DNA of 64,000 nucleotides from Cyanophora paradoxa CCMP329 (taxonomy: Eukaryota; Plantae; Glaucophyta), in NCBI GenBank assembly GCA_004431415.1, contig QPMI01000219.1:62001-126000 (forward strand), in the 5' to 3' direction. The translations under genes and the position numbers were made by a program. How positions within the stretch are numbered: the stretch's first letter is position 1; every line of letters begins with the position of its first letter. Below are positions 6,040 to 57,852 of this stretch, one piece after another. Below the pieces are notes generated by a model. That model searched no databases and had not been told where the DNA came from. It saw nothing but the letters and a program-made list of their open reading frames with translations.

Positions 6040-9000
6040 TGCACAAGGCACTTGCCTTGTGCACCCTGGCATGTGCACCCTGCACCAGCAAGTCACTCAG
6101 TCGAAGGCCCCAGGTTTGGGATCTGCCACAAAATAGAAGAAAGATGCACCCCAAATCTCTCTGGGGGAATATGCATGAGGCTAGCCTTAGGCAGATGACC
6201 CACCCACCTGCAAGCCACTCAGTCAAAGGCCCCAGGTTTCTGATCCGCCACAAAATTGAAGACAAATGCACCCCAAATCTCTCCTGGGGAATAGGTTTGA
6301 GGTTTCCAGTCACTCAGTCAAAGGCCCCAGGTTTCCAATCTGCCACAAAAAAGAAGAAAGATGCACTCCAAATGTCTCTGGGGGAATATGCACAAGGCGC
6401 TAGCCTTAGGCAGATGACCCACCTCAAAGCAAGTAGCTCAGTCAAAGGGCCCAGGTTTCCTATCTGCCAGACAAAAGAAGAAAGATGCACCCCAAATCTC
6501 TCTGGGGGAATATGCACAAGGCGCTAGCCTTAGGCAGATGACCCGCCTCAAAGCAAGTTACTCAGTCAAAGGCCCCAGGTTTCCGATCTGCCAGAAAAAA
6601 GAGGAAAGATGCACCCCAAATCTCTCTGTGGGGCAATTTTAGGTCAATTCGGATTAGTGCAGGATATTACACAAAGGACGATTTGGCAGCTGAAATTACG
6701 AAATTGCTGTCCAGTAAAAACAACAGTGATGACGCCAATGGGTTTGAACTTGGCAACTATGTGAAGTGCAGGTACAGCAACACTGTAGGTGCATACGAAT
6801 TTTACAGTAATGTTGTGTTCTTCCTGATTTTTTGGTTGAAACCATTGAAGAACACGAACAATAGCCAGAAGAACACACTGAACAAGAAGATGGCAGTGTT
6901 TGGTTTCAGGACCCAAGATATATATACCAGCACCAACTATGATGTTGTAGCGGGAGACACGTTTGTTCAAGAGAGCGGCTCCACTCTGAATAAAAGGAAA
7001 CGAACATGCACAAGGCACTTGCCTTGTGCACCCTGGCATGTGCACCCTGCACCAGCAAGTCACTCAGTGGAAGGCCCCAGGTTTGGGATCTGCCACAAAA
7101 TAGAAGAAAGATGCACCCCAAATCTCTCTGGGGGAATATGCATGAGGCTAGCCTTAGGCAGATGACCCACCCACCTGCAAGCCACTCAGTCAAAGGCCCC
7201 AGGTTTCTGATCCGCCACAAAATTGAAGACAAATGCACCCCAAATCTCTCCTGGGGAATAGGTTTGAGGTTTCCAGTCACTCAGTCAAAGGCCCCAGGTT
7301 TCCAATCTGCCACAAAAAAGAAGAAAGATGCACTCCAAATGTCTCTGGGGGAATATGCACAAGGCGCTAGCCTTAGGCACATGACCCACCTCAAAGCAAG
7401 TAGCTCAGTCAAAGGGCCCAGGTTTCCTATCTGCCAGACAAAAGAAGAAAGATGCACCCCAAATCTCTCTGGGGGAATATGCACAAGGCGCTAGCCTTAG
7501 GCAGATGACCCACCTAAATGCAAGTTACTCAGTCAAAGGCCCCAGGTTTCCGATCTGCCAGAAAAAAGAGGAAAGATGCACCCCAAATCTCTCTGTGGGG
7601 CAATTTTAGGCCAATTCGGATTAGTGCAGGATATTACACGAAGGACGATTTGGCAGCTGAAATTACGAAATTGCTGTCCAGTAAAAACAACAGTGATGAC
7701 GCCAATGGGTTTGAACTTGGCAACTATGTGAAGTGCAGGTACAGCAACACTGTAGGTGCATACGAATTTTACAGTAATGTTGTGTTCTTCCTGATTTTTT
7801 GGTTGAAACCATTGAAGAACACGAACAATAGCCAGAAGAACACACTGAACAAGAAGATGGCAGTGCTTGGTTTCAGGACCCAAGATATATATACCAGCAC
7901 CAACTATGATGTTGTAGCGGGGGACACGTTTGTTCAAGAGAGCGGCTCCACTCTGAATAAAAGGAAACGAACATGCACAAGGCACTTGCCTTGTGCACCC
8001 TGGCATGTGCACCCTGCACCAGCAAGTCACTCAGTGGAAGGCCCCAGGTTTGGGATCTGCCACAAAATAGAAGAAAGATGCACCCCAAATCTCTCTGGGG
8101 GAATATGCATGAGGCAAGCCTTCGGCAGATGACCCACCCACCTGCAAGCCACTCAGTCAAAGGCCCCAGGTTTCTGATCCGCCACAAAATTGAAGACAAA
8201 TGCACCCCAAATCTCTCCTGGGGAATAGGTTTGAGGTTTCCAGTCACTCAGTCAAAGGCCCCAGGTTTCCAATCTGCCACAAAAAAGAAGAAAGATGCAC
8301 TCCAAATGTCTCTGGGGGAATATGCACAAGGCGCTAGCCTTAGGCACATGACCCACCTCAAAGCAAGTAGCTCAGTCAAAGGGCCCAGGTTTCCTATCTG
8401 CCAGACAAAAGAAGAAAGATGCACCCCAAATCTCTCTGGGGGAATATGCACAAGGCGCTAGCCTTAGGCAGATGACCCACCTAAATGCAAGTTACTCAGT
8501 CAAAGGCCCCAGGTTTCCGATCTGCCAGAAAAAAGAGGAAAGATGCACCCCAAATCTCTCTGTGGGGCAATTTTAGGCCAATTCGGATTAGTGCAGGATA
8601 TTACACGAAGGACGATTTGGCAGCTGAAATTACGAAATTGCTGTCCAGTAAAAACAACAGTGATGACGCCAATGGGTTTGAACTTGGCAACTATGTGAAG
8701 TGCAGGTACAGCAACACTGTAGGTGCATACGAATTTTACAGTAATGTTGTGTTCTTCCTGATTTTTTGGTTGAAACCATTGAAGAACACGAACAATAGCC
8801 AGAAGAACACACTGAACAAGAAGATGGCAGTGCTTGGTTTCAGGACCCAAGATATATATACCAGCACCAACTATGATGTTGTAGCGGGGGACACGTTTGT
8901 TCAAGAGAGCGGCTCCACTCTGAATAAAAGGAAACGAACATGCACAAGGCACTTGCCTTGTGCACCCTGGCATGTGCACCCTGCACCAGCAAGTCACTCA

Positions 9001-12000
9001 GTGGAAGGCCCCAGGTTTGGGATCTGCCACAAAATAGAAGAAAGATGCACCCCAAATCTCTCTGGGGGAATATGCATGAGGCAAGCCTTCGGCAGATGAC
9101 CCACCCACCTGCAAGCCACTCAGTCAAAGGCCCCAGGTTTCTGATCCGCCACAAAATTGAAGACAAATGCACCCCAAATCTCTCCTGGGGAATAGGTTTG
9201 AGGTTTCCAGTCACTCAGTCAAAGGCCCCAGGTTTCCAATCTGCCACAAAAAAGAAGAAAGATGCACTCCAAATGTCTCTGGGGGAATATGCACAAGGCG
9301 CTAGCCTTAGGCACATGACCCACCTCAAAGCAAGTGGCTCAGTCAAAGGGCCCAGGTTTCCTATCTGCCAGACAAAAGAAGAAAGATGCACCCCAAATCT
9401 CTCTGGGGGAATATGCACAAGGCGCTAGCCTTAGGCAGATGACCCACCTAAATGCAAGTTACTCAGTCAAAGGCCCCAGGTTTCCGATCTGCCAGAAAAA
9501 AGAGGAAAGATGCACCCCAAATCTCTCTGTGGGGCAATTTTAGGCCAATTCGGATTAGTGCAGGATATTACACGAAGGACGATTTGGCAGCTGAAATTAC
9601 GAAATTGCTGTCCAGTAAAAACAACAGTGATGATGCCAATGGGTTTGAACTTGGCAACTATGTGAAGTGCAGGTACAGCAACACTGTAGGTGCATACGAA
9701 TTTTACAGTAATGTTGTGTTCTTCCTGATTTTTTGGTTGAAACCATTGAAGAACACGAACAATAGCCAGAAGAACACACTGAACAAGAAGATGGCAGTGT
9801 TTGGTTTCAGGACCCAAGATATATATACCAGCACCAACTATGAATTTGTAGCGGGGGACACGTTTGTTCAAGAGAGCGGCTCCACTCTGAATAAAAGGAT
9901 ACGAACATGCACAAGGCACTTGCCTTGTGCACCCTGGCATGTGCACCCTGCACCAGCAAGTCACTCAGTGGAAGGCCCCAGGTTTGGGATCTGCCACAAA
10001 ATAGAAGAAAGATGCACCCCAAATCTCTCTGGGGGAATATGCATGAGGCTAGCCTTAGGCAGATGACCCACCCACCTGCAAGCCACTCAGTCAAAGGCCC
10101 CAGGTTTCTGATCCGCCACAAAATTGAAGACAAATGCACCCCAAATCTCTCCTGGGGAATAGGTTTGAGGTTTCCAGTCACTCAGTCAAAGGCCCCAGGT
10201 TTCCAATCTGCCACAAAAAGAAGAAAGATGCACTCCAAATGTCTCTGGGGGAATATGCACAAGGCGCTAGCCTTAGGCAGATGACCCACCTCAAAGCAAG
10301 TAGCTCAGTCAAAGGGCCCAGGTTTCCTATCTGCCAGACAAAAGAAGAAAGATGCACCCCAAATCTCTCTGGGGGAATATGCACAAGGCGCTAGCCTTAG
10401 GCAGATGACCCACCTAAAAGCAAGTTACTCAGTCAAAGGCCCCAGGTTTCCGATCTGCCAGAAAAAAGAGGAAAGATGCACCCCAAATCTCTCTGTGGGG
10501 CAATTTTAGGTCAATTCGGATTAGTGCAGGATATTACACGAAGGACGATTTGGCAGCTGAAATTACGAAAGTGCTGTCCAGTAAAAACAACAGTGATGAC
10601 GCCAATGGGTTTGAACTTGGCAACTATGTGAAGTGCAGGTACAGCAACACTGTAGGTGCATACGAATTTTACAGTAATGTTGTGTTCTTCCTGATTTTTT
10701 GGTTGAAACCATTGAAGAACACGACCAATAGCCAGAAGAACACACTGAACAAGAAGATGGCAGTGCTTGGTTTCAGGACCCAAGATATATATACCAGCAC
10801 CAACTATGATGTTGTAGCGGGGGACACGTTTGTTCAAGAGAGTGGCTCCACTCTGAATAAAAGGATACGAACATGCACAAGGCACTTGCCTTGTGCACCC
10901 TGGCATGTGCACCCTGCACCAGCAAGTCACTCAGTGGAAGGCCCCAGGTTTGGGATCTGCCACAAAATAGAAGAAAGATGCACCCCAAATCTCTCTGGGG
11001 GAATATGCATGAGGCTAGCCTTAGGCAGATGACCCACCCACCTGCAAGCCACTCAGTCAAAGGCCCCAGGTTTCTGATCCGCCACAAAATTGAAGACAAA
11101 TGCACCCCAAATCTCTCTGGGGGAATATGCACAAGGCGCTAGCCTTAGGCAGATGAACCCACCCACCAGCAAATCACTCAGTCAAAGGCCCCAGGTTTCC
11201 GATCGGCCACAAAAGAGAAGAAAGATGCACCCCAAATCTCTCTGGGGGAATATGCAAAAGGCGCTAGCCTTAGGCAGATGACCCACCCACCTGCAAGCCA
11301 CTCAGTCAAAGGCCCCAGGTTTCTGATCCGCCACAAAATTGAAGATGGATGCACCCCAAATCTCTCTGGGTGAATATGCACAAGGCGCTAGCCTTAGGCA
11401 GATGAACCCACCCACCAGCAAATCACTCAGTCAAAGGCCCCAGGTTTCTGATCGGCCACAAGATGCACCCCAAATCTCTCCTGGGGAATAGGTTTGAGGT
11501 TTCCAGTCACTCAGTCAAAGGCCCCAGGTTTCCAATCTGCCACAAAAGAGAAGAAAGATGCACTCCAAATGTCTCTGGGGGAATATGCACAAGGCGCTAG
11601 CCATAGGCAGATGACCCACCTCAAAGCAAGTAGCTCAGTCAAAGGGCCCAGGTTTCCTATCTGCCAGACAAAAGAAGAAAGATGCACCCCAAATCTCTCT
11701 GGGGGAATATGCACAAGGCGCTAGCCTTACGCAGATGACCCACCTAAAAGCAAGTTACTCAGTCAAAGGCCCCAGGTTTCCGATCTGCCAGAAAAAAGAG
11801 GAAAGATGCACCCCAAATCTCTCTGTGGGGCAATTTTAGGTCAATTCGGATTAGTGCAGGATATTACACGAAGGACGATTTGGCAGCTGAAATTACGAAA
11901 GTGCTGTCCAGTAAAAACAACAGTGATGACGCCAATGGGTTTGAACTTGGCAACTATGTGAAGTGCAGGTACAGCAACACTGTAGGTGCATACGAATTTT

Positions 12001-12208
12001 ACAGTAATGTTGTGTTCTTCCTGATTTTTTGGTTGAAACCATTGAAGAACACGAACAATAGCCAGAAGAACACACTGAACAAGAAGAAAAAAAAATTTGC
12101 TCGGATAGGTCCGGCCAGGCAGGGAGGCGGTTGCCCCCCGCCCCACGCGCCGCTGTTTCCAGCGGCTCGGCCGGACCCTAGGCGCTTTATTTACGATACC
12201 TTAGGCGG

Positions 12209-15200
12209 TCATCCCATGACTCCGTACCTCAGGTAGTTCTTGAAAGCTCGTACCGCGAGCGTTTCCACTACTGCTGTCTCGTGGCACGCTGTCCCCGGGG
12301 CGTGGTATTCTTGGCAGTGGTCGCAGTGGCCCTCTCCGCGTATCCGATCGAGTTCCCGCGCCGCGATACGGTGCGATTCGAGTTCGCGGTTTCCCTTTCG
12401 ATTCCGGGTCGGGTCGGGCGGGTTCGAATCCGGCCGGTCCTCATTCTCCGCTTCTTGCATCGCTGTCGCTCCCCCGACCTCTGCCGCGCTCGGCGTCCCA
12501 GCAGCGTCCTCGGGATGTCCTCCTGCAGCATCTGGGTCGGCCTCGCTGCCAACCGTCGGTGCTCGGTTCCCCTTCGGTGCGCGCTTGCTTCCCTGCGTGA
12601 TCCCCCACACTCGGGACTCATGCTTGCTCGTTGTTTTGCTTCTCGGCTTCCAGATCTCGCTGTGTACTTCCGTGAGCACCGTCTCCGCCAGCTGCCGGCA
12701 GACCGGTATGGTCTCTGCTTCGGCAAATCCCAGGTCGACTAAGACTCTGTCCATGTCGTTCGGCAGCAGGCCCTGGAGTACCCGCATGTGATCCAGGTCG
12801 TGCGCGCTGCGCCAACCCTTGTGCTCGCCTTGCATGTCGTGCCATGCGCCCGGATAGCTATTGCCCGCCTCCGGCGCGTGCACGTACCTCCGGCTGAAGT
12901 CATAGCACCGCATTCTCGCCGACAGGCTCTTCTCGGCTACCGGGCGCGCCTCGTAGACGCGTTCTAGGTCGAGGCTCGCCTGCTCCACCGATTTGGTTGG
13001 CTGCTCGAGGTGCGCCGCCTTGCGCTTTCCGGCCCGGGCGTTCGGGGCCTGCTCGGAGCCCTCTGACCGTTCTGCCCGCTCCTTCGCCCCCTCAGCTGCG
13101 TCGAGCGCTCTGCGCGCCGCCCCCACGACCTTCTTGTCGTACAGTTTCAGGAACTCCTCGTCAACTGCTTTCTGGATGCGGGCGTGAGCGGTGGGCAGGC
13201 TGGGGCATTCGATCAGGTAGTGGCGCAGCGTCTCCTTGGGTTTGGCCTCGCTCGCGGCGCACCGCAGGCACTCCCCTTCTGACTTCCCCTCGTATAGGTC
13301 CGGGCGGTCGTGCAGGCGTTTGGGCATCAGTGGCAGCCCGTCGATCAGCGCCTTCACGCCGTGCGCCCGCCACTTGTGCCTGTAACCGCTTATCTTGCGG
13401 TGCCAGTACTTGACGCTCAGCAGCTCGAGCGCTTGCTTGGGGCTTCCGAGCGCGTCCCGCAGGGCTTCGCCCGTCCGTCTCAGTTGAGTCCACTTGACGA
13501 AGCTCCGCACCGCGTGTTGCATTCTGATGTATCTGCAGGGGTCGATCTCAACCCGCTCGCCCTGGTGGATGAGCTCGAAGCCCGTGGACTCGGGGGGTAC
13601 GAGTACGTCGGCCCGGTACGTCATGTGCTCGCCGGTGGTGGGGTTGATGAGGGGCATGTTCGCTGCTGCCTTCGCGCGCAGGTCGACTTCCTTGTGGATC
13701 TCGTCGTTGGGGTCGTGGCCCGGCACCCACACTACTTCCACTCCTGCGTCCTCCCGCCTTCCTGCCCCGCGGAGCTCCATCACCGCGCGCCACAGCCGGT
13801 ACTCTGCTTTGTAGCTATCCCGTGTGTCTTTGCGCGCTGACTTCCGCCTGTAGTATCGCACCCGGGTGGCGAAGTTCCGTACGACGGAGAGGTTGTCACA
13901 GTGTACCCTCACCATCTTGTTGAGCGGTGCGATCAGCGTCGCGAGTATGGCCCAGTGTAGCTCGGCTTTATAATTGGACAGCTGCCCTCGCAGCCTCCCA
14001 CCGTACTGCATGTGCGGTTCCTGGGGGTCGTATACGGCGTACCCCGCTCTCGCCTTACCGGCCTTGCCCAGGTCGAAGGTGGATCCGTTGGAGTTGATTT
14101 GGTACTCCTCCTGTCCTTCGCGTTCGGCGATCCGGGTCTGCATCCCTTCTGTACCCGCTTCCAGGATGGCTTCCTTACGCATCTCGTAGATCTGCCATAT
14201 CGTCGCTCCCAGCAGCGCTTCGGGGCCCGCTTCCTCCTCTTCGTCTCCGGCCTCGGCGGGATCCTCCGGCTTGGGGGCGGCCGCTGTCTGCTCCCGAGTG
14301 TTGTTCTCTTCCGTCCCTCTCTCTCGCTTGGCGGTCGGCTGTACCCGTCTCCGTTTGCTTTGCTTCTGCACCCGTTTCCCTTCCTTGACTGGGGCTGCGC
14401 GGGCTCGCAGTTGGTACCGGCTTCTCCCTGCAGCCTGCACCTGCGGCGGGTCTACGTCGTCGGGCCTTGGTGGGCCTCCGGGGTCCTCGCTCATGTCCGA
14501 TTTGCGATCTGATTCTACCGCCTCCATCCCGCCCGTCCTCCAGGCGTTCAGCTCCTCAGTCTCGGGGGGCAGGCGCACCCGCGGCGGCCGCTCCTCGTCT
14601 CTGTCGGTTTCCGTCTGACGTTCGTACCGGACGCCCCACAGTGGGAAGAGCGCCTTTACTCTCTCATCGTACTCGCAGTTCTCGGTGTCAAAGTTCATGC
14701 TGCGTACTTCGGGGTCCGCCGGGTCCGCTTCCCTCGCCCAGCAGCACGTTCCGTCGCACTTTTCCCAGATCGTGTTTGCCTGACTGTTCTTGTCGCGGGG
14801 TACGTAGTGCGCGATGCGCGCAACTTGCGTTCCGTTCGAGTCCATCCTCGTGCTCATTACTAGCGCGAGTTCTTCGTTTCCTGGTATGTCGTTGGCTACC
14901 AGGGCGAAGGTGCCAGGTCGGATGTCATGTCCCTTAGCGAAGACTGACTGCGTAGCGGCCGCTCGCAGGCTTTGTTTGAGTTCCGTGCCCCCCTCCTTGC
15001 AGAGGTGCGTTCGGAGGAGCCTGTACCATTCTGGTTCGCTCCACGCTCGTGATCTTGCCTTTTCCCAGGTCTTCCAGGGCTGGAGGTGGGTCCCATTCGG
15101 CGCCCTCACCTGCGCTACTTGGAGGAGTCCCGCTCCATTAAGTGGGGAGCCATCTTCGCGTAGTCGCGCGACGGGACGTGGCTCTGAATCGTGTCCGCCG

Positions 15201-18200
15201 GTGCGGCCGGGGCGAGATCCGGGTGGGTGGTCTTGATCGTGTACCCCGCGCGCCCGCCACGTGTATCGTGTGCGCCATCAGGTGCTCTTTCTGAAGGTAC
15301 CGGGCCAGCTCCGTCTGCTCCAGCGGATTCAGGTTGGTTCCCATTGCCTCTTTGAGGGCCAGTAGCCGCTCCATGCGTACCTTCCCCACTAAGCTGTTCG
15401 TGTCGCGCAGCTGCGCCAGCAGCGTCGTCAGCTGTTCTTCGAGCTGCAGCGCGCGAAGGTTGAACAGGCCGTAGGGCGCCGGCGACGTCATCATATCGTT
15501 TGGTACGCTTTTGCTCAGCTCCGCGTGGTGTTTAACTACCGACCGCCAGGTGCGCTCCAGCTCGTCGACGTCTGCATCGCTGAGCTTCGCCATCTTCACC
15601 GCGTAGCGTAGGAATCCCTGCACCAGCGTGTTCACCAGGTACACGCTCTCCTCCTCGTACACTGTCTTTGTTCTGAGCACGGCCTCGGTCGCTCGCAGCT
15701 TCTCCTTCATGTAGTCGATCTGGGGTCGGCTGTCGAGGTCGACTGTCATGAACACGCCGAGAACCTTGAGCGGGTCGTTCTCGCTCATTGTTCGTTTGAT
15801 CTGCTTCCCTTCCTTGCCGATCTCCGGTGCGTTCATCGTGGGCCCGTATTTCGGGCTCGACTTCGAGTTGCGTGTCACGTATCGCGTTTTCTCGGCGCTG
15901 ATCTCGATATCGTGCATATCGCAGAAATCGCTGGCGAGGCGGGCCCTCTCCACGATTCCCTCGCGGCTCTTGGCAATCCAGTGCGTGTCGTCTGCGAAGG
16001 CCGTGTGCGTCACCTTCGCGATTCCTTGGTTCATCTCGTACGGCCCGAGCGTTCCCCCCATCTTGTTCGCCACGAAGTCCTGAGCGTGCAGCAGGGGGTC
16101 GTAGAAGATGAGCCAGTGAAGTGGCGCCTCAACTGCACCCTGGGCGAGCCCCACTTCCCTCCTGAATTCCTCCGTCGTTCCGTGCACCGTTCGTATCTTC
16201 GTGCGGTTGTTCATGTGCGAGAACCGGTGCAGCTCTATATATTCCTCGGGTATGTTCAGCCTGCGGAATGCGAGCTCCATGCTCTCCCAGCTGACCGTGT
16301 CGTAGGCCCGACGGATGTCCTGGAGGATGACGTACAGCTCCTTGTCGTACTGGTGCGCGTCCTCTAGGATTCCCTGCAGGATAAAGAGGGGGTCCTCCGT
16401 CGTTTTTCCTTTCAGGAAGCCCGAGTTCTGGCCCTTGAGCGCGCCTTGCTTCACGAGCATGTCCTAGAGGCGGTCCGCCAGTATCCCCTTCATGAGCTTG
16501 TCCCCCACCTCAAGCAACGTGATGGGCCGTACGTTCGTCAGTTTTCCGTCCCACGTTGGGATCTTGCTGATTCCGACCGTTGTCGCCTTGTTCCACGAGT
16601 CGGGCGTCCTCCTCAGGCGGACTGCGTCGCAGATGATGAGGTAGAGCAGCTCGTTAGGGGCGCTCTCCCCCGGCCAGCTCTTGATCTGCGAGTTCTGCAG
16701 GTTCGAGTCTCCGGGGGCCGTCGGCTTCAGCGTTCGCCTTTTCTCGTTGTACTCTGCCCATCGCGGCGCGTCCATCGCTCCCTCGTATTTCAGGTGGGTC
16801 TTGGTCTTGTACATGTGCTTCCATAGTCGCTTCTCTTTGAGGGTTTGGTCGATCTTCGGATCCCGCTTTCCCCAGTACTCTTCGAAGTACTCTTTTAGGC
16901 GTCCGCGCACTGACGGGGCATCTGCTAGGACTTGTGGCCTTTTATGGTCGGGTACTTCTTCGACAAGCGTTTCGAAGGGCACGATCCCCGTGCTTTTGCC
17001 CATCGTCGCCTGCCAGTACCTGCCAGGGTCCGTCTTGAACCACTCCCTCGTCTTGTCCCGGTACTCCGCGCGCTTCTTCGTCTTCAGCTTTTTGTACTCC
17101 TTCGGGATTTCCCGGCGCAGTCGGTTGATGGCCGCCCCGAGCGCTTCGTGCCAGTACTGCCATTCTGCCATCGGTGCGCGGGGTTGGGGGAGGGGGCCGG
17201 CCGGGAGGCTTGTGCTGACCGCTTGCAGGCGCGCGAGTCGGACCTCTGGCTGCAGCCGGTGCCAGGCCCGTCTCAGCTTTCGCATCTTTAGGCTCATGTT
17301 GTGCCGTCGCGCGATCGTGGGGGGCTTGTCCGGGTCGCGCGCGCTGAAGATTTCCGCGCAGCCTACTTCCACCGCCGCCCGGCCTGTCTCCTCGGCCAGT
17401 TCTTTGTACGCTTCGTCCGCCGCTTTGATTAGCTTCTGTTTCGCGGCTTCTGATAAGGCCCTCCACTCCTCTTCGCTCTTCGGCCTCTCAATCTTTTTGC
17501 ATTTGTCTAATACGGGCTTCAGGTACTCCTCTAGGATCCCGTAGTACTCCGCCCTCGCCTCCTTCTTCGCTTCCCCTGGTCCGTACAGCGATTTGAAGTT
17601 GTACCTGGGTGGCCGGTCTTTGTGTTTGATCGCGCCCGGCCCGAACATGCGCAGGTTGGCGGTCAGGTCGATGTCCGCCATCATCGGCAGGTGATCCGAT
17701 TCCATGTACTCGTTGGCTCGCTCGACTTCGATGCCCGCCCGCAGCCCGTCTGTGGCCGCCGGCCCGTTCAGCAGGATCACGTCAATTCTGCTTCCCGTTT
17801 CGATCTCGTCCGGCACGCCCTCCGTCGAGCCCCGGATGTACGTCACTTCCTTCGCGTTCGGCTGCGCGACCCGGTAGGTGTCTTTCCACCCCCATTCCTC
17901 GACTCTGGCCCAGAGGTCTTCTGCGTAGTGATCGGCTCCCGCCGGCGTTGCCCACCTTCCCGCGCTGATTCTGTCCTTCGTCCTTTCCGCGACCGAGTTC
18001 AGGTCGCCCATCACGATGAGCGGCTGGGGGTAGGGGTCAAGATCGACCTGCTCGTCCAGCTCCTGCAGTGTCTTCATGATCTGTTCGTAATCTGCTTTCG
18101 TTTGCGCGTTCTCGTTCTTATCCGGCGGCACGTACACCGAGACCAGATGCACTTGTCTGAAGTTCGGGAGCTCGAGCTTGACGGCTACCAGGCGACCCGG

Positions 18201-20372
18201 GATGCGGTGCGTGACCTTTGCGTAGGGGTGCCAGCGCCTCGAGATCCATAGCAGGGCTCCTTTCTTATGTCTCGCGCCTTCCTTATCCGCCGGGGGGCCG
18301 GACGTGAAGTAGGGCCCGATCCCCTTCTCGTCCCCCGCGTTCAGCATCTTTTCCCACTGATTTGGCCTGCCCCCGCGCAGGCAGGGTAGGTTGATCTCCT
18401 GGAGGGCTACTGCGTCGAGTCCGTACGCCTCGGCCATGCGGGGGAGGGCGCTGCGCTTCGCGTCCGTGAACGAGCAGACGTTCCTGGTGAGCAGCCGGAG
18501 GCGTCCCTGTAGCGCTTTCGCCGCCTCCTGACCGTTGAGCTGTACCTTGATCCTTGCTGCCCCGCCCAGGAAAGATGCCACCAGTCCCGTCGCGAGGCTC
18601 GGGAAGACCGTACCTTTGGCTAGTCCCTGCGCTGCTGCGGTTCCCTGCACCATTGCCAGTAGGATCGCTAGTACTAGCGCTAGTTCAGTTAAGTTCAGCG
18701 GTTTTACATGCATCGCCCTCTGTGGTGTCGTCTGGCTAGCTACTTCTCGGGGCTTGCTCGTGTTCTTGCACGTTCCGCTTGTCACTCTGTCCGCTGCAAG
18801 GGCGCTGTTCCCTTGCGTTCCCCCTGTCAGGAGCAGGAGGGCGAGTCGGAGGGCACTGCTGGCTCGCCGGGCCTGTCGGGTTTCCTGTCCCTTTCTCTTT
18901 GCTATCTGTCTTCTTGTTCTAGCCCTCTCCCCGTCGTGATTCTCGCCCCTGTTCTTAGTGTCCTCTCCATTTGCAGCGCTGCAGGCGGCAATGATAGCTG
19001 TTATCGTATTTACAGTCATGCTAGAGAGACCTTGGAGTTCGGCTATGTACATTATTAGGATTATTCCGAGCAGATTTATTATGCGCGGCAGGGGCGGGGC
19101 GCGGGGGGCTGCTTGTTGGAGCGCCTTGAGAGCCGTTCCCGCCGCTGTCCAGCGCCAGAGGTTCACTGGCTCCGGGTTCGAGTTCACCATTGCGCTTGAG
19201 CTTGTTTGTCTGCGGGCGGGCGGGCGGGGCGATGGGCCGGTCGGGGCAGTGTATTCGTCAGAGAGAGCTCGAGGGTGGGATTTGTGGACGAGCGAATCTG
19301 GATCCGGATCTTGTGTTGGCCACGCAGCTGCGGAACAGCTCGTGCCTGACTCCGCAGCTGCCGAGCAGCTCGGGCCTTCCCTTTCGCCGCCGAGCGACTC
19401 TGGGACGTCTTGTACTGGCCACGCAGCTGCCAAGCAGCTCGTGCCTGACTCCGCAGCTGCCGAGCAGCTCGGGCCTTCCCTTTCGCCGCCGAGCGGCTCT
19501 GGGGCTTCTTGTACTGGCCACGCAGCTGCCAAGCAGCTCGTGCCTGACTCCGCAGCTGCCGAGCAGCTCGGGCCTTCCTTTTCGATCGTGATAGCGAGGT
19601 GGGGCGAGGCGGGCGGGACGGGTGGGGGCGGGATGATGTCGCACATGGTCATGTTGATCATGAAGTGAGCGCGAGGGCCCATGATCAGATCTGCGCATTC
19701 TGCGGCGGGCGGGCTGGCGATGAGCGCAGGGAGGCAGGGCGGGGCGCACAGCGTCTCTGTTGTGTTGGCGCTGGCGTTCGTTGAGGCCGGGAGCAGCATA
19801 ACAATCCGGATCAAATCTGCGTTACTGGAGCACAGCAGCGCTTTTGCGGCTAGCGGGCGCGCGCGGGGGTCTAGCGCTTCGGGCATCATGGTCTCGTACG
19901 GTTTCGTGGCTGTTGAGTGGCGTTCGCGGCCGCCTGTCGCAGTCTTCAATCCCGTTCCGTTGCCGAGAGCTGTTTGAACGAGAACTGCGGTCAGCAGGGT
20001 CAGCATTGCGATTCCCATTGGGATGCGTATACAAATCGTCCTTCGTAGTGTCCTTGTCGAGCGAAGTCGGGCTCCCGGTGCTGCGTCCGTAGCGGGAAGC
20101 CGCGAGGCTTCCCGCTGCCGCGGCCTGCCCCGGTGCGGGGGGCAGGCACGCTCGCTCGGCTGGCTGCTGGGGTCCCCGGATGCGTGTTTGGATCCGGGGC
20201 CTGGCCGCTGGCGTGTCGTTCGCTGGCGGCCGTCTTCGCTCGCAGCTCCGTGCGTCTCCGCGGCTTGTCTGGGCGCTCGGGCAGGGTGTCCCGACGCTTG
20301 CTCGCATCTTATGCTGTGGTCCTGTGGGCGTTCTCGCGCTGGCCGCTGTTGTGCGGTGATGATGAAGTACAT
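12209..20372 (-). pseudogene. LINE polyprotein (~2700 aa reconstructed): hydrophobic N-terminal extension, AP endonuclease, reverse transcriptase, RNase H, CCHC zinc finger
   Basis: APE: TRNVCS, ALQEI, GDLNS, SRIDVIL, SDHLP. RT: RPITLLE, QDIRRAYDTV, GLAQG, IFYDPLL, AFADD. RNase H: NSNGS, YKAEL, HCDN, WVPGH, EVDLRAK. Zinc finger: CLRC...ETLRHYLIEC. Lesions are an in-frame TAG at 16466-16464 and two single-G losses in G runs near 15255 and 15130. Confidence 0.93.
19310..19586 (-). repeat. 99-bp (33-aa) in-frame tandem repeat, ~2.8 copies, inside the LINE ORF
   Basis: The EREGPSCSAAAESGTSCLAAAWPVQ unit occurs three times; ggccacgcagctg recurs at 19318, 19417 and 19516. Confidence 0.92.
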
Positions 20373-21613
20373 GTTGACAAGGTTTGGGTGCGCGTTGCAC
20401 GGAGAAGCGGCTGATCGCTTCTTTATGCTTTGGTTTGGTGTTCTAGCGTCTTTCGCAGGCCGGAGAGGCCTGGATTTGCTGTTTCGGGCGCGCTGTACAA
20501 ATTTTCCGGGGTACCGGACCGGCCCACACTGAACAAGAAGATGGCAGTGCTTGGTTTCAGGACCCAAGATATATATACCAGCACCAACTATAATGTTGTA
20601 GCGGGGGACACGTTTGTTCAAGAGAGCGGCTCCACTCTGAATAAAAGGATACGAACATGCACAAGGCACTTGCCTTGTGCACCCTGGCATGTGCACCCTG
20701 CACCAGCAAGTCACTCAGTGGAAGGCCCCAGGTTTGGGATCTGCCACAAAATAGAAGAAAGATGCACCCCAAATCTCTCTGGGGGAATATGCATGAGGCA
20801 AGCCTTCGGCAGATGACCCACCAACCTGCAAGCCACTCAGTCAAAGGCCCCAGGTTTCTGATCCGCCACAAAATTGAAGACAAATGAACCCCAAATCTCT
20901 CCTGGGGAATAGGTTTGAGGTTTCCAGTCACTCAGTCAAAGGCCCCAGGTTTCCAATCTGCCACAAAAAAGAAGAAAGATGCACTCCAAATGTCTCTGGG
21001 GGAATATGCACAAGGTGCTAGCCTTAGGCAGATGACCCACCTCAAAGCAAGTAGCTCAGTCAAAGGGCCCAGGTTTCCTATCTGCCAGACAAAAGAAGAA
21101 AGATGCACCCCAAATCTCTCTGGGGGAATATGCACAAGGCGCTAGCCTTAGGCAGATGACCCACCTAAAAGCAAGTTACTCAGTCAAAGGCCCCAGGTTT
21201 CCGATCTGCCAGAAAAAAAGAGGAAATATGCACCCCAAATCTCTCTGTGGGGCAATTTTAGGTCAATTCGGATTAGTGCAGGATATTACACGAAGGACGA
21301 TTTGGCAGCTGAAATTACGAAAGTGCTGTCCAGTAAAAACAACAGTGATGACGCCAATGGGTTTGAACTTGGCAACTATGTGAAGTGCAGGTACAGCAAC
21401 ACTGTAGGTGCATACGAATTTTACAGTAATATTGTGTTCTTCCTGATTTTTTGGTTGAAACCATTGAAGAACACGAACAATAGCCAGAAGAACACACTGA
21501 ACAAGAAGATGGCAGTGCTTGGTTTCAGGACCCAAGATATATATACCAGCACCAACTATGACGTTGTAGCGGGGGACACCTTTGTTCAAGAGAGCGGCTC
21601 CACTCTGAATAAA

Positions 21614-22153
21614 CGACGTGCTTCTGAGCACTCGGGCGGCCCGGGGCCTCCCAACCCCCGCCGCAGCGGACTCCCCGCGCGCGCGCGCGCCAGCTGGAGG
21701 AGGTATCTCTCGGCCGAGGAGCACAGGTCGCCGGCTGCGGCCGGCGATGCTGTGCGCCCGCCGGTTTTCACCCGGGCTCTCACGGGCTCCGGTTTCCGGC
21801 CCTCCCTGGGGTTAGTCGGCTTTGCTCTCTTAGTGCGCTTCTTCCCTGCCAAATTGAGGGCTATAGTTCAGGCTCAGCCGCTTCGACCTCATCCTCGCTT
21901 ATACATCGGTCCTCTCTGTAGGCGCCCTTGTCCTGAGGGGGGTTATAGTAGCTCTGCTCTGCTTCGGCTCTCTAGGCAGGTGTAGGCAGTGTTTCTAGGC
22001 AGGTATAGGCCCCTTTCTCCAGTACAATAGCTCCACCCGGTCCGATGTCCGAAAGGCTTGTTCCCGTAGGCTCATCTCTCGACTTGACACAGATGGACAC
22101 TGCAGTCATATCCCTAGCCATTTGTCTCGGTGTGTGCGAATTCATTTGTTAAG
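21614..22153 (-). mobile_element. 540-bp insertion, probably a 5'-truncated retroelement 3' end or a SINE-like element
   Basis: 15-bp TSD TCCACTCTGAATAAA at 21599-21613 and 22154-22168; absent from the other repeat units. The left part has many GC hairpins (e.g. ccggaaaccgg and gtgct-caga-agcac on the - strand). Strand is inferred. Confidence 0.85.
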
Positions 22154-22670
22154 TCCACTCTGAATAAAAGGATACGAACATGCACAAGGCACTTGCCTTG
22201 TGCACCCTGGCATGTGCACCCTGCACCAGCAAGTCACTCAGTGGAAGACCCCAGGTTTGGGATCTGCCACAAAATAGAAGAAAGATGCACCCCAAATCTC
22301 TCTGGGGGAATATGCATGAGGCTAGCCTTAGGCAGATGACCCACCCACCTGCAAGCCACTCAGTCAAAGGCCCCAGATTTCTGATCCGCCACAAAATTGA
22401 AGATTGATGCACCCCAAATCTCTCTGGGGGAATATGCACAAGGCGCTAGCCTAAGGCAGATGAACCCACCCACCAGCAAATCACTCAGTCAAAGGCCCCA
22501 GGTTTCTGATTCGCCACAAAATAGAAGAAAGATGCACCCCAAATCTCTCTGGGGGAATATTTCATGAGGCTAGCCTTAGGCAGATGACCCACCCACCTGC
22601 AAGCCACTCAGTCAAAGGCCCCAGGTTTCTGATCCGCCACAAAATTGAAGATGGATGCACCCCAAATCTC

Positions 22671-25321
22671 TAAGAGGGACCACAGCAGAGGCCCTCTAAG
22701 AGGTGCTGCCCTTCGAGGTGTGACCCCCACACAGAGTGTGGGGGCTTGAATGTATCCTGGGTTCACTCCTTCTCAGTACTTGTCAGTTTGAATTCCCGTG
22801 GGGCCCACAACAGCAAGGTCAGGTGCACACAAAAACTTTCCAGGGGGAACATGCACAAGGCGCTAGCCTTAGGCAGGTGCACCCTTCCCAGCAGAGGCCC
22901 TGCAATAGGCTCAGCTTTTCGAAGTGGGGCCCCAACACAGTGTTTGGGGGCTTGAATGTTTCCTGGGTTCACTCCTTAGCCCTGGTCAGTTTGAATTCCT
23001 GTTGGGCCCTAAACAGGAAGGTCAGGTGGGCCCACAACAGGAAAGTCAGGTGCACACAAAAACTTTCCAGGGGGAACACGCATAAGGCGCTATCCTTAGG
23101 CAGTCGCACCCTTCCCAGCAGAGGACCTGCAAGAGGCTCGGCTCTTCAAAGTGGGGCCCCCACACAGAGTGTGGGGGCTTGAATGTTTCCTGGGTTCACT
23201 CCTTCTTAGCCCTGGTCAGTTTGAATTCCTGTTGGGCCCTAAACAGGAAGGTCAGGTGGGCCCATAACAGGAAGGTCAGGTGCACACAAAACCTTTCCAG
23301 GGGGAACGTGCACAAGCGCTAGCCTTAGGCAGGTGCACCCTTCCCAGCAGAGGCCTTTTAAGAGGCTCTGCCCTTCCAAGTGGGACCCACCGAGTGTTTG
23401 GGGACTTGAATGTTTCCTGGGTACACTCCTTAGCCCTGGTCAGTTTGAATTCCCGTTGGGCCCTAAACAGGAAGGTCAGGTGCACACAAAAACTTTCCAG
23501 GGGGAACATGCACAAGGCGCTAGCCTTACGCAGGTGCACCCTTCCCAGCAGAGGACCTCCAAGAGGCTTGGCTCTTCAAAGTGGGGCCCCCACACAGAGT
23601 GTGGGGGCTTGAATGTTTCCTGGGTTCACTCCTTCTTAGCCCTGGTCAGTTTGAATTCCTGTTGGGCCCTAAACAGGAAGGTCGGGTGGGCCCGTAACAG
23701 GAAGGTCAGGTGCACACAAAACCTTTCCAGGGGGAACATGCACAAGCGCTAGCCTTACGCAGGTGCACCCTGCCCAGCAGAGGCCCTCTAAGAGGTGCTG
23801 CCCTTCGAGGTGTGACCCCCACACAGAGTGTGGGGGCTTGAATGTATCCTGGGTTCACTCCTTCTCAGTACTTGTCAGTTTGAATTCCCGTGGGGCCCAC
23901 AACAGCAAGGTCAGGTGCACACAAAAACTTTCCAGGGGGAACATGCACAAGGCGCTAGCCTTAGGCAGGTGCACCCTTCCCAGCAGAGGCCCTGCAAGAG
24001 GCTCAGCTTTTCGAAGTGGGGCCCCCACACAGTGTTTGGGGGCTTGAATGTTTCCTGGGTTCACTCCTTAGCCCTGGTCAGTTTGAATTCCTGTTGGGCC
24101 CTAAACAGGAAGGTCAGGTGGGCCCACAACAGGAAAGTCAGGTGCACACAAAAACTTTCCAGGGGGAACACGCATAAGGCGCTATTCTCAGGCAGTTGCA
24201 CCCTTCCCAGCAGAGGACCTGCAAGAGGCTTGGCTCTTCAAAGTGGGGCCCCCACACAGAGTGTGGGGGCTTGAGTGTTTCCTGGGTTCACTCCTTCTTA
24301 GCCCTGGTCAGTTTGAATTCCTCTTGGGCCCTAAACAGGAAGGTCGGGTGGGCCCATAACAGGAAGGTCAGGTGCACACAAAACCTTTCCAGGGGGAACA
24401 TGCACAAGGCGCTAGCCTTAGGCAGGTGCACCCTTCCCAGCAGAAGCCTTTTAAGAGGCTCTGCCCTTCCAAGTGGGACCCCCACCGAGTGTTTGGGGAC
24501 TTGAATGTTTCCAGGGTTCACTCCCTCTTAGCCCTGGTCACTTTGAATTCCCGTTGGGCCCACAAAAGCAAGGTCAGATGCACACAAAAACTTTCCAGGG
24601 GGAACATGCACAAGCGCTAGCCTTACGCAGGTGCACCCTTCCCAGCAGAGGCCTTTTAAGAGGCTCTGCCCTTCCAAGTGGGACCCACCGAGTGTTTGGG
24701 GACTGGAATGTTTCCTGGGTACACTCCTTAGCCCTGGTCAGTTTGAATTCCCGTTGGGCCCTAAACAGGAAGGTCAGGTGCACACAAAAACTTTCCAGGG
24801 GGAACATGCACAAGGCGCTAGCCTTACGCAGGTGCACCCTTCCCAGCAGAGGACCTCCAAGAGGCTTGGCTCTTCAAAGTGGGGCCCCCACACAGAGTGT
24901 GGGGGCTTGAATGTTTCCTGGGTTCACTCCTTCTTAGCCCTGGTCAGTTTGAATTCCTGTTGGGCCCTAAACAGGAAGGCCGGGTGGGCCCATAACAGGA
25001 AGGTCAGGTGCACACAAAACCTTTCCAGGGGGAACATGCACAAGGCGCTAGCCTTAGGCAGGTGCACCCTGCCCAGCAGAGGCCCTCTAAGAGGTGCTGC
25101 CCTTCGAGGTGTGACCCCCACACAGAGTGTGGGGGCTTGAATGTATCCTGGGTTCACTCCTTCTCAGTACTTGTCAGTTTGAATTCCCGTTGGGCCCACA
25201 ACAGCAAGGTCAGGTGCACACAAAAACTTTCCAGGGGGAACATGCACAAGGCGCTAGCCTTAGGCAGGTGCACCCTTCCCAGCAGAGGCCCTGCAAGAGG
25301 CTCAGCTTTTCGAAGTGGGGC
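22671..25321 (+). repeat. Satellite II, ~205-225-bp monomer with a ~1.09-kb higher-order repeat
   Basis: About 12 monomers containing cccccacacagagtgtggggg, gtcagtttgaattcc and tgcacaaggcgctagccttaggcag. ORFs at 22736 and 23828 recur at 1092 bp. A further diverged copy lies at ~57455-57725. Confidence 0.93.
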
Positions 25322-25858: not shown

Positions 25859-28800
25859 GGCCGTCGGCGAGCAGTGCCTCACTGGTGGCTCGGTCGCATG
25901 CCCGTTGCCCTTAAACCCAGCCCGTGGAGCTGCTTGTGCAGCGATTGTGCCGCTTTCATCGGTGCCAGGCGCAGCAGCGCCTTGCCGACACATGAGGAGG
26001 GCCGCGTGGACAGCCATGCTCGCAGCGCAAAGAGGCGTGCGATTGAGAGGCGCGCAAAGAGCGATCACGAGGCTCTCATGATCAGCCCCAACATCCAATC
26101 TGGTACGGCAGTTCCTGCTTAACTTTGCACCGCTACGAACTTCAAATGACGTAGAATCAAGTAGAATCAGAAACGCAAACCCCGCCGCCGACTGCAGACA
26201 CAAAGCGACCGCCAGGTACCATTTACTGCAACCAACTCCGCATGAGCCCGTCAAGCACCTGACAATCGTTGCCAGCTGCGAATGTGGACCCTCCGCTCAT
26301 GCGGGCACGGTAACTTCACGAAAGTTCTGCGCAAAAACAAAACCAATAACAAACTACAGGAACCCGATGCCCATCTCCACTTAAGGCTGCCACGATTAAA
26401 TACCTCAGCGTAGATCTGCTGCATTCGTACATGTACACACTTGACAACAGTCCCCCGTTCTACCGCCTCTTCACCTGCGCCCCATGGCCCCGACTGCATG
26501 CCCCCTGCCCGTCCGCGCCTCTAGCTCGCATGCGCAGCGCCCGTCCGCGCCTCGCCCGAAGACCAGTCATAGCTATAGGCCCTGGCCTATCCCGCCCCGC
26601 TGCGCCTCGGCTGTCCTCCCGGCCGCGGCCCCCCGCCGTGCCGCATGGTGCCCATCCACGTGCAAGCCTCGCCCCAAGGCCCGTCGTAGGGCCCGGGCCC
26701 GGCACATGGGCCGCACGCATTGGCAGGGCTACCACACGTGAGTGTGGACTTGTTAATATTCTGCATGAAAAATCAAAATTATTAATTAAAGTTAACTCAA
26801 AATTATCTCAACTTCGAGAAATCAAATTAGTCGGGGCCGGCCGTGGCCGGCGGCGGCCTGGACCAGGCCAGGGCGCCGGCGCTGGCCCCGGTCCGAGGGC
26901 ACCCTGCATATGGGGATGCGCATGCGCAGGCTTCGAAAGCCCGGGCAGGGCCGCTGCTCTCCGAAGCTCCCACCACTACTTATATGCAGAAAGCAGTCAT
27001 ACAGAAAACGCATTGCCAGCAAAAAATGCATGTGCGCGAAGGCAGCGCAGCCCTATCAATAGCTAGCACTGAGAAAACGAGTTGCAGCTGCTGCCCCCAC
27101 CTCTAAGCCATACTCCTGAAAACAGCGAGCTCCTGACCCGCTGCCCTGCAAGCAGGACAATCGCTGGTCGCTGCGAGCACGCGAGTGTCAAAAACGAGCT
27201 GTGCGCCTCGGCAAGTGAAGGGAGCAGCGCTAGCAGACCGGCTCAGACGTGAAGTGATGCAACCCGCACAAGGTCATGCGGCACCTCGCGACGCTCGTTG
27301 CGCTGTGCGCGTCGCGGTCAGCGAACGACAAGGTTGGCATGCGCGCGCACGGCTGTGCACCTCGGCAAAGAGAAGTGGCAGAAGAACGGATCCGGAGTGA
27401 CAGCGGCACCATCCCCGCCCGTAGCCGAGGGCGAGGACGAGGCGCTCGCTGCGCTCGGAGCGTCAAGCGAAAGAGGAGAAGAACGCGCGCCTGTGAAAAG
27501 ACCGCACCCGTCCGAGCTCCCGCGGCAAGAAGTGCGAGATGCTGGCTGCGCGTGAACGGCACCCGCTGCGCTGCGCGCGTCCCCGGTGTCAGAACAAGAT
27601 CAAGGCGAGAGTAGCGGAAACAAGAACGAGCACCTAGCCTGCGGGAGAAGGAGCCAGGCGAGCTGCGAGTGTTGGAAGAGACAGGACCCGGAACCGGGCG
27701 AAGCGCGCCGTGTTAGCGAGGCTCGTGCGTTAGCATCGTCCGCGAGGTTTCTTGACCAGCGGGACCGCTTCCCGCCCGGCCGCCAAGAGTGCCAGCGAGC
27801 AAGTCGCGGCCGCCACTTGGCCGTGCTCGCGGGGCTCAGTCGTGCGTGTTCCCTGACATGCAAGCAGGATGAGCGATCGAAGGAAACAGACGGAAACCAG
27901 AAACACCTTGCTTCGCATCGGCAGGGGCCTCGCCTTTCTGCGCGGGCCTGTCAAAGCAACATTAGCTGACCGGCGGCGGCCGGGCAACGAGTAGAGATTA
28001 AGGGCGGAAGGAGGTCGAAAACGACGCGTTCGAGAGCGTTCGTGGCCGCGGCCGAACCCAGCAGCAGGGGCAGCGACAGTCTGCGTTTGAAATCACACCC
28101 AGCACGAGCCGGGCGAGAGCCTCAAGGCGCAAGAGGTGCATCGTTCTCTCTCAAAGTGGCCGCGTTCGCTGCGGCAACAGCACCACTGCTCGGCCTGTTC
28201 ACAGAGTCAGGGAGTCCGGCTGCGCGGCGAAGCCCAGAACCGACGCACCGAGCCGCCGTGCTGCCAGGAGTTGCAACTATCTGGCAAGGCCGTCTGCCGC
28301 CGCGAGGGCCAGCCGACGCAGTCACCGCGGCCGGTTGCCGGTCGGCAAGTTGGGACCCGGGGTACGACAACGAATTCCCTTGGAGACCGGCCTAGGCCTA
28401 GGCCTAGGTCTGGTCATGTGCGTTCCTCGCTTCGATCCGCCTTCCAATGCATCAAACCCTCTCAATAAGGAGCAGTTCATGACGTGGCACGCATTGCTGG
28501 TGCTCGTGCAGCTTAATGAGTCACAGGCCCCCCCCTTGGCGAAAAAAGGTGCTAGCGCCTAATGGCTTTAGATCTAAACTCGGATTGTTTCAAAATCAGA
28601 GAGAGGACCCTCGAAAGCTTTGACGACTTCATTTTGACGGTAATCAGCAATTCCAGGAATGACTTCTTTCAGTACTGAAGAGAAGATGAGCTGTTCATCA
28701 AGTCACCAGACTGTGCTCATGATGTGCTCATGAGACACATGAAGGTGCACCGACGTTCCGGGAATCGGCAGACCGGCCAAAAAATATATTCCTGTAATCT

Positions 28801-30202
28801 GGAAGTTAAGGGCTTTCTAAAGATGTATTTAGCGTGTCTTGAGTCGATGCTGGCAACCCGTGAGAGCATTGCATGTTTCAACCATGGCCCCTGCATGATC
28901 TCAGCGAAAACTCGTATTGGGCCTTCCGAAAGCTGCTTTAAATCACTCATATAATCAATACCTTACTTCACGAGTGATTGAGATCATATGGATGCGCTTC
29001 TGCAGAGACTAATTTGGTCATTTTCACTTTTTTGCCCCCCCTTGATTTCAGCCACAAGAGAGTACGTTCAGAGGGTCAAGAGTCACAGCTTAGTGCTGAA
29101 ACAATTACTATGTGCCTAAATACAACCAAACGAAGCATTCGCTTCACTGTTCGCACATGTAGCAGCCCGAAATGCATTTTTCAAGGAAACTCGACGATAA
29201 TGGCCGTCATTCCTTCCCCCCCCTTTTTTTACGGACGATACCCAGCGGTGCCAGCTGCAGCTGCTGCGCTTGCGCCCTTGGCCTCAAGTTCGCTCGGCTG
29301 GCTGCAGTGCAGAGTCTGCAGCTCCTCAGCTTCCAACTCCAGCTCCCTTCGTGCTCGGGCCAGATGCGCGTCGCACCTCGCAGACTTGGCGGCCGCTCGT
29401 GGCACGCAGCGCGCGGCTATTTTGCCAGCCAGAGGGTGTTGCCGCAGGACTGGCCTCCGCCTTGACTGCATCCGTGCGCCCCGCGCGCTGACTTGCTTGT
29501 TCCCAACCGCCCGTACTCGCTGTGCTCGCCAAGTTCCTCGCCTACCTGTCCGGTTACTCGCCGTACGTCTCACTCACGCCCGCAGATCGCCGTCTCTGAC
29601 CCGCGGCCTGTTAGGAGCGTTCACGCTGGCCGCCGCTGACTTCGAGCTCTCGCACGCTTCTGTGCGCGAAGCGTTCCTCTAAGATGGGCCCGGCCCGCAG
29701 TGCATGTGGGTCTGGACTCGCCGGGCGCTGCGTGCGCGCGGAACGACGCCGAACTCCCGATTGGCGGTCGTCTCGGGTGCGCCTCCCAAGCATAGCTTGG
29801 GGCCAGCGGCGCGCGAATGCATAGCTGACGATGCGCAGGACGTAACCCGGCGCGGCCTTCGGCGGCGCGGCTTGCCGTACGGGGCAGCAGCGGACGGCGG
29901 CGGCACGGCTCGCGGGACGGGGCGGCGGCGCGGCGGGCGGCGGCGCGGCTCGCGGGACGGAGCCGCGGCGCAGCGGGCAGCGGGGTGGCTCGCGGAACGG
30001 GGCGGCGGCCGGCAAGCCGCGTCGCCGCCCGCTGCGCCGCCGTCCCAGCGAGCCGCCCCGCCGCCCGCCGCCGACACCCGCCGCGAAAGGAGTCCCGCAC
30101 CCGGGCGGGGCGGGGCGGAGCTGCGTGGCTTGGCCGGGCCGGGGCACCGGCCGGGCGCCGGCACAGGGGGCGCCGGTGCGGCTCGCTGTACGGGGCGGAG
30201 GC

Positions 30203-40700: not shown

Positions 40701-41475
40701 CTAACGCACGAGCCTCGCTAACACGGCGCGCTTCGCCCGGTTCCGGGTCCTGTCTCTTCCAACACTCGCAGCTCGCCTGGCTCCTTCTCCCGCAGGCTAG
40801 GTGCTCGTTCTTGTTTCCGCTACTCTCGCCTTGATCTTGTTCTGACACCGGTGACGCGCGCAGCGCAGCGGGTGCCGTTCACGCGCGGCCAGCATCTCGC
40901 ACTTCTTGCTGCGGGAGCTCGGACGGGTGCGGTCTTTTCGCAGGCGCGCGTTCTTCTCCTCTTTTGCTTGACGCTCCGAGCGCAGCGAGCGCCTCGTCCT
41001 CGCCCTCGGCTACGGGCGGGGATGGTGCCGCTGTCACTCCGGATCCGTTCTTCTGCCACTTCTCTTTGCCGAGGTGCACAGCCGCGCGCGCGCATGCCAA
41101 CCTTGTCTCTTTCTGTTCGAGCGTTCGCTGACCGCGACGCTCACAGCGCAATGAGCGCCGCGAGGTGCTGCATGACCTTGTGCGGGTTGCATCACTTCAC
41201 GTCTGAGCCGGTCTGCTAGCGCTGCTCCCTTCACTTGCCGAGGCGCACAGCTCGTTTTTGACACTCCTGTGCTCGCAGCTATCGTGCTGCTAGCCGGGCG
41301 GCGGGTCAGGAGCTCGCTGTTTTGGGGAGTATGGCTCAGAGGTAGGGGGCAGCAGCTGCAACTCGTTTTCTCGGTGCTAGCTATTGACAGGGCTGCCTTG
41401 CCTTTGCGCACATGCATTTTTTGCTGGCAATGCGTTTCTTTAATTTCTGCTTTCTGTATATAGTGGTGAGAGCTA
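37705..41475 (-). repeat. Right arm of the large inverted repeat
   Basis: Reverse complement of 26964-31283 without the 630-bp fold-back element. Scattered SNPs and indels; more diverged at both ends. Confidence 0.93.
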
Positions 41476-42003: not shown

Positions 42004-42235
42004 TCCTGTGTTTACCCGTGCAATCGCTGTTTACCCATGTTCACCCATGTTTACCCATGTTCCCTGTGCCTACCCATGTCAGCCTGTGCCCACCCATGCC
42101 GACCTGTGCCTTCTTGTGCTTTTCTGTGCAACCTGTGCTTTCCTGTGTTCTTCCGTGCTTTTCTGTGTTATGCCATGCTTTCCCGTGCTATGCTGTGCTT
42201 TTCTGTGCGATTCTGTGTCAATTTTTTTTTTTTTT
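42004..42235 (+). repeat. Degenerate 10-bp-period repeat ending in a T14 run
   Basis: Decamers of the ccatgtttac / ctgtgctttt type for ~215 bp, then caa+T14. Confidence 0.8.
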
Positions 42236-48713: not shown

Positions 48714-49290
48714 ATCGTCCGCGCGTACAGGCTCCACCCCTCCCTGAGGGCCAGTCGCCCATGTATACAGGCCAGGTGCATGGCGCCGCCGTCCTCCTCT
48801 AGTCCGGGGGTCGCGCGGGCCCTGGGCCTCGTCTTCTTCCTCGACCTCTTCTCCGCTTGGGTGCGTGCCGCAGTCGCCGCCGTCTCACGCGACCCAACCT
48901 GGCCCTGCGCAGGAGTCCTCGAACGACGAGCTGGACCCTCGCAGGGTGGCCACGGCAGTCCTGGATCGCATGCTGGTGACCTCAGGCGCCCAGCTGCGGA
49001 TCGTCGCCACGGGCCTGAACCACGACCGCCTCAGCGCCGACGTTGTCTTCTGCATCGCCACGGGGATCATGCGGGGCTACAGCAACCCCTCGACACTCAC
49101 CGTCGTCTTCGAATGGTGCACGCTTGCGCCCCCCCTCTCCCTCCCCTTTCTGACGCGTGGCCACCCCCCCCCCCCACCAGGTTTGGGGCGGAGTTTGAGG
49201 AGATCTCCTGCCTCTTCCTGGGGCCGGTGGGCCTGCTTGCGGCCCTGCGAGAGCCCCCCCCCCGGCTGTGGCCTCTTCCTCGTCGACTAC

Positions 49291-57752: not shown

Positions 57753-57852
57753 ACCCTATCCGACTATATCAGCCAAAACAGCAGCAAATCTACTGTATGA
57801 AGACATTGTCTGCTTTCATGGAGTGCCTGGAGTGATTTACACAGATCCAGGC
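57753..57852 (+). pseudogene. Ty3/Gypsy-type integrase fragment (second catalytic Asp region)
   Basis: PYPTISAKTAANLLYEDIVCFHGVPGVIYTDPG matches the rve core pattern HGxPxxIxSDxG. Confidence 0.8.

Follow-up and report, generated by a model that had tools for sequence, protein, structure and literature searches.

A LINE of Cyanophora paradoxa with a short T run at its 3' end and a proposed purine-primed mode of reverse transcription

Among LINEs, members of the RTE clade encode a short APE-RT protein without RNase H, and the RandI/Dualen and RTEX elements show an APE-RT-RNase H layout. T-rich ends have precedent in EhLINE1, in RTE and RandI elements, and in plant SINEs. EhLINE1 and EhSINE1 of Entamoeba histolytica carry T-rich 3' tails, and in the model as outlined in PMC1635306 (citing Mandal 2004) the tail pairs with the A-rich bottom strand. 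A structured 3' end is common to the RTE LINEs and Au SINEs of plants, for which a tail-target pairing model has been described; the Au SINEs end in T3-5 with duplications starting with T, and the RTE LINEs end in (GTT)n (PMC6007223). Pairing of a U-rich tail with an A-rich strand has therefore already been proposed, in the EhLINE1 and RTE models. The grass SINEs p-SINE1-3 and ZmSINE2 are tRNA headed with (T)n ends, and a 2013 review suggests that T-tailed SINEs may depend on unidentified LINEs recognizing poly(U) (PMC3747384). The same review gives (ATT)n and (CTATTT)n tails for RandI, (CTTT)n for SINEX-2, headless short partners, and (CA)n, (CAA)n, and similar tails for green-algal RTEX, and among the plant and algal LINEs it lists, none has a tail made of T alone. 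Retrotransposition of human L1 is abolished by a 7U or 26U end, although the L1 RT can copy such a template when given an A primer (PMC6191937). A literature search, blind to bracketed tail spellings and with Repbase outside its reach, yielded no APE-type LINE whose tail is pure T; a prior description is possible.

The element described here lies in a 64,000-nucleotide stretch of the genome of C. paradoxa (the window), with the following boundaries.

12088-20524, minus strand: non-LTR retrotransposon (LINE) of 8,437 bp, delimited by its target-site duplication and empty sites, with retrotransposon domains and no terminal repeats
12071-12087, plus strand: target-site duplication at the 3' end of the LINE, 17 bp, with a 7-nt purine run at its plus-strand 3' end (putative primer)
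20525-20541, plus strand: target-site duplication at the 5' end of the LINE, second copy of the 17-mer
12088-12095, minus strand: T8 tail of the LINE, where empty monomers read TGG

The 17-mer CACACTGAACAAGAAGA is found on the plus strand on both sides of the 8,437 bp, and the host site is a single 967-bp satellite monomer. Seven intact monomers (at 4847, 6874, 7841, 8808, 9775, 10741, and 21493) contain CACACTGAACAAGAAGA once each, followed by TGG. Because these empty sites have TGG there, the A's at 12088-12095 are not target DNA, which rules out a T run derived from the target. Each flank matches neighboring monomers at as many as 396 of 400 bases, and the insertion is therefore young. The strand of the LINE is minus since the APE, RT, and RNase H domains all map to it in Pfam searches. 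The initial annotation had described a minus-strand element whose duplication is followed by a run of A's, and the domains and empty monomers bear this layout out, with eight A's being new and a ninth belonging to the duplication. Its description of a GAGCAAA-plus-T end running into the target is likewise correct, as the sense strand ends in GAGCAAA-T8 and continues into TCTTCTTG.

The coding capacity of the element, searched in pieces where the frame is broken, is organized as follows.

12209-20372, minus strand: single coding region of about 2,720 codons without a separate ORF1, broken in the window copy
18492-20372, minus strand: N-terminal 627 codons with three hydrophobic stretches and a 99-bp repeat (33-codon unit) present 2.8 times
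17690-18491, minus strand: APE endonuclease (PF03372, E 1.9e-08) with N, E, Y, GDLN, RID, and SDH motifs
15750-16560, minus strand: reverse transcriptase (PF00078, E 4.2e-15) with QG at 16142 and AFADD at 16001, the domain being split by a stop
13660-14095, minus strand: RNase H (PF00075, E 1.7e-04, below the curated cutoff), also recognized by motifs
13205-13270, minus strand: CCHC zinc knuckle, recognized by motif

All catalytic motifs of the APE domain are present, and in the family APE, RT, and RNase H lie in one frame. The N-terminal 627 codons have no Pfam match and no usable Atlas match. A second copy, P0002 on tig00021572, is about 98% identical outside gaps, and compared with it the window copy shows a TAG at 16466-16464 (Gln in P0002) and frame changes near 15250 and 15130, which may be mutations or assembly errors. 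The element had been called autonomous, which fits the family but not the window copy as assembled, given its one stop and two frameshifts. The RT piece of the window copy is identical to a C. paradoxa protein on tig00000946, and sister families with 40 to 46% identity also come from Cyanophora; in a quick tree built without named reference RTs, the Cyanophora LINE proteins form one group with a support of 91. A length-limited homolog search with the C-terminal frame matched P0002 only, and contig depth, a rough measure, suggests 3 to 8 copies of the LINE body. In more distant RT relatives (∼30% identity) the tail is poly(A) (L007/L008) or a repeat of AAACCTC (L001), which shows that the tail letter can change within this RT group. 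Scanning the DNA of metagenome, viral, and bacterial collections for the 3' motif or the RT gave no match. An apparently T-ended metagenome relative (L005/L006) was rejected, its T run being the terminator of the target tRNA-Ala gene. This APE-RT-RNase H LINE adjoins a tRNA-Ala(AGC) gene (L005, 299-372 and 7285-7323), the 3' half of the tRNA and the T terminator are repeated after the element, and it is probably tRNA targeted.

With APE ahead of RT, a target duplication of the variable-length kind, and no terminal repeats, the Cyanophora LINE is an APE-type non-LTR element. As a family it resembles EhLINE1 in being an autonomous LINE with a T-rich tail and a candidate SINE partner. The R4-type EhLINE1 differs in having a restriction-like endonuclease and no APE, in its very AT-rich genome, and in pairing placed in an upstream T-rich region; the Cyanophora element, in a GC-rich host, combines APE and RNase H with a clean T8. 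In the region 3' of the CCHC knuckle, there is neither a Pfam match to a restriction-like endonuclease nor a PD-(D/E)xK pattern. Like RTE elements, it has a single open reading frame and a tail letter equal to the first base of the duplication (T in both the LINE and the SINE described below), but its tail is pure T instead of (GTT)n, and it has RNase H and a zinc knuckle in addition, its predicted 3' structure being a three-way junction. RandI/Dualen and RTEX are comparable as algal LINEs with simple-repeat tails, which are T rich in RandI, and the arrangement of APE, RT, and RNase H in one frame agrees with RandI/Dualen; the element is not a Dualen because the restriction-like endonuclease is absent. 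Mammalian L1 is similar in its APE, RT, and CCHC modules, its 7- to 20-bp duplications, and its tail-primer pairing, as proposed for the Cyanophora element, and it differs in having poly(A) on a T-rich primer, two ORFs, and no RNase H. In the Cyanophora LINE, T8 stands in the place of poly(A), and one frame runs from 20372 into APE without a separate ORF1. The T tail could be seen as a simple-repeat tail of the RTE and RandI sort reduced to a single letter, and the element would then behave as a stringent LINE of the RTE/RandI type.

Upstream of the T run, the 3' end contains two further features.

12096-12102, minus strand: GAGCAAA terminal motif, also at the end of the SINE (49575-49581)
12107-12178, minus strand: predicted three-way junction in the RNA, its loops being GAAA and GCAA; this segment also forms the body of a 90-nt family

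The junction fold is predicted for the last 94 nt of the LINE with a z of -5.0. At 12128 and 12140 the window letters disagree with almost the entire run depth, and the majority letters perfect the second stem, shifting the predicted energy from -57.6 to -63.1 kcal/mol. The 3' end has no match in Rfam, which rules out a known structured RNA such as a ribozyme, SRP, or tRNA. The terminal 90 nt (12088-12181, minus strand) also occur on their own as a headless family numbering a few hundred members, with a summed depth of 230 to 420 times single copy in two runs and 70 to 135 times in a third. The 5' ends of this family cluster at 12174-12181, the base of the closing stem, and it outnumbers the LINE about 50-fold.

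Contigs from four sequencing runs show what follows the T run in other copies. X5, X2, and X3 are DNA runs, the RNA label of X17 is a guess, and the runs may share a strain. Contigs matching through all eight A's and then passing into unlike flanks number 21 in X5, 16 in X2, 11 in X3, and 3 in X17; flank agreement among contigs leaving the run is 0.41 to 0.63, and the commonest break lies exactly at 12088. As the contigs leave the run into unlike flanks, the T run is terminal, and an internal run followed by more element sequence is ruled out. The runs are short, with T8 in the LINE, T10 in the SINE, and mostly 8 to 9 T's in the contigs. In several diverged contigs the match ends at 12094-12099, and some old copies therefore have few T's, if any.

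The contigs leaving the T run mostly represent the 90-nt family, and the junction of a full-length LINE is read in the window copy only, contigs breaking where the LINE end merges with that family. The window copy might therefore have gained the end of the roughly 50-fold commoner 90-nt family by a template switch, with the LINE family proper ending otherwise. This is most improbable, given that the collapsed X3 contig of all LINE copies is unbroken from the body into the junction (12153-14000) and that the LINE ends 30 nt past the stop codon without a seam. Judged from these sequences, the T end is very probably a family trait. The question raised at the outset, whether the tail is a one-off or internal, is thus answered by a terminal T end that recurs in the SINE and in 11 to 21 contigs per DNA run.

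The second T-tailed insertion in the window is a SINE.

49291-49591, plus strand: tRNA-headed SINE with A and B boxes, ending in GAGCAAA plus T10 (49582-49591)
49276-49290, plus strand: left target-site duplication of the SINE, 15 bp, beginning with TTCCTC
49592-49606, plus strand: right target-site duplication of the SINE, pairing with the left copy

The A and B boxes, read from the sequence, are TGGTGGAGTGG and GGTTCGAATCC; together with the duplication and the tail they identify a tRNA-derived SINE, although ARAGORN and Rfam call no tRNA in its head. The 13-mer GAGCAAATTTTTT occurs at two places in the window, the LINE end and the SINE end, with 0.14 occurrences expected even when one mismatch is allowed. 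The part in common with the LINE is limited to the 7 nt of GAGCAAA and the T's, and the SINE end folds no better than shuffled sequences. The SINE body has no internal TTTT, and Pol III termination is presumably the source of its T run. The SINE resembles the T-tailed SINEs of grasses, with the difference that in Cyanophora a LINE with the same terminus is present in the same genome. At 42028-42235, a 10-bp tandem repeat is followed by CAA and T14; no duplication was found upstream of this T14, and the locus was excluded from the T-tailed insertions.

The initial annotation had suggested that the U tail stems from Pol III-like termination or from uridylation, and neither source is borne out for the LINE RNA, considering the short tails, the encoded run, and the lack of an A or B box. 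Every inserted copy encodes the run, so that daughter copies inherit it without an added step. A LINE RNA that is truly U ended, made by Pol III or by a polymerase stopping at the first long T run, would agree with the fact that the 8,429 sense-strand nt preceding the tail contain no TTTT and with a candidate SINE partner that has A and B boxes and a TTTT-free body. At 12% T, however, zero runs are expected with a P of 0.20 to 0.52, so the depletion is not significant as a Pol III signature; furthermore, the 5' UTR and 5' end of the LINE contain no A or B box, the 2,720-codon frame needs translation, and an AATAAA lies 90 nt upstream of the tail. Such a transcript is accordingly considered very unlikely. 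A still slimmer chance is given to an RNA whose 3' end is made by cutting or trimming behind GAGCAAA and then extended with U's by a terminal transferase, with the element exploiting a mark that blocks human L1. The varying lengths (T8, T10, and contig ends at 12085-12089) and the ability of L1 ORF2p to copy U-tailed RNA given an A primer (PMC6191937) speak for it; the narrow length range speaks against it, as does the run already encoded in each inserted copy, which leaves the extra step unneeded. The AATAAA (12186-12191, minus strand) lies just before the junction, beyond the usual cleavage distance from the tail. On the plus strand at 12576-13853, antisense to the LINE, X17 contigs skip six GT..AG introns of 55 to 77 nt, some with CTGAC-like branch points. 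This model was examined exon by exon; the transcript looks spliced and noncoding because phase arithmetic gives no stop-free frame through the first three exons.

The targets of both window elements have a common feature at the priming strand, whose 3' end is a purine run of 7 nt (AAGAAGA) at the LINE and of 6 nt (GAGGAA) at the SINE. Both duplications accordingly open with a T and remain pyrimidine over 7 and 6 nt, respectively. The local frequencies of such purine runs are 0.041 (LINE) and 0.067 (SINE), giving a joint chance of about 0.003 for n = 2, and the target preference rests on these two sites. U pairs with A and with G, and therefore every primer position can pair, though weakly; the predicted U:purine duplexes reach -1.1 and -0.3 kcal/mol with RNA parameters. 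The T run might instead be simply the last encoded piece of the RNA, with RT starting without target pairing, as in R2, and with a purine bias due to endonuclease preference or chance. The weak duplex energy and the number of targets are compatible with this, as is one RNA contig flank that appears to end in GTCGCCA instead of a purine run, if the listed letters adjoin the junction. The pyrimidine stretches at both duplications and their low joint chance speak against a start without pairing, which is considered unlikely, although endonuclease preference alone may account for these stretches. Since a T end is found in the LINE and in the small elements, RNA copying probably starts by U pairing with an A/G-rich target. 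Of the mirror-image target-primed reverse transcription envisaged in the initial annotation, the terminal T end, its occurrence in other retroposed elements, and the purine primers at both window targets stand, and the Pol III or uridylation source of the U tail falls away.

The preferred reading, with a probability of about 0.58, is that of a young, low-copy (about 3 to 8) family of APE-RT-RNase H LINEs whose 3' end consists of the junction, GAGCAAA, and a short DNA-templated T run that primes on purine-rich nicks. Here, the LINE protein would bind the junction RNA, and the APE nick would leave a purine-rich primer 3' end with which the U run could pair through A-U and G-U pairs. RT would start inside the U run, whatever comes after it in the transcript, followed by a second nick 15 to 17 nt away that would create the target duplication, and slippage may hold the T run near 8 to 10. 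The machinery of the LINE, or that of a sister family, might also copy both the 90-nt element and the SINE; as a product of Pol III, the SINE transcript would in any case be U ended. Going by the sequences, the mechanism is probably ordinary target-primed reverse transcription with a tail polarity reversed relative to that of human L1. It is unlikely that the element is the predicted autonomous poly(U)-priming APE LINE for T-tailed SINEs, having a U-ended RNA and an endonuclease/RT polarity switched to purine primers and hence being indifferent to, or helped by, uridylation. On the preferred reading, the kind of U-run end that disables human L1 is tolerated by an APE-type LINE, and the element would provide a model for the copying of T-tailed Pol III SINEs without a poly(A) step. 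The LINE, the 90-nt substrate with its few hundred insertions, and the SINE form a compact system for weighing tail-target pairing in target-primed reverse transcription.

The window is rich in other repeats. A 124- to 125-bp satellite with higher-order units (967 bp and others) occupies 6040-11900, 20540-22700, and 49900-64000 and occurs in both orientations around 50000-56000; both T-tailed elements of the window lie in or beside it. Two inverted repeat arms of ∼2.3 kb (27327-29623 and 38808-41107) are 99% identical, and the 9 kb between them include a 348-bp tandem array.
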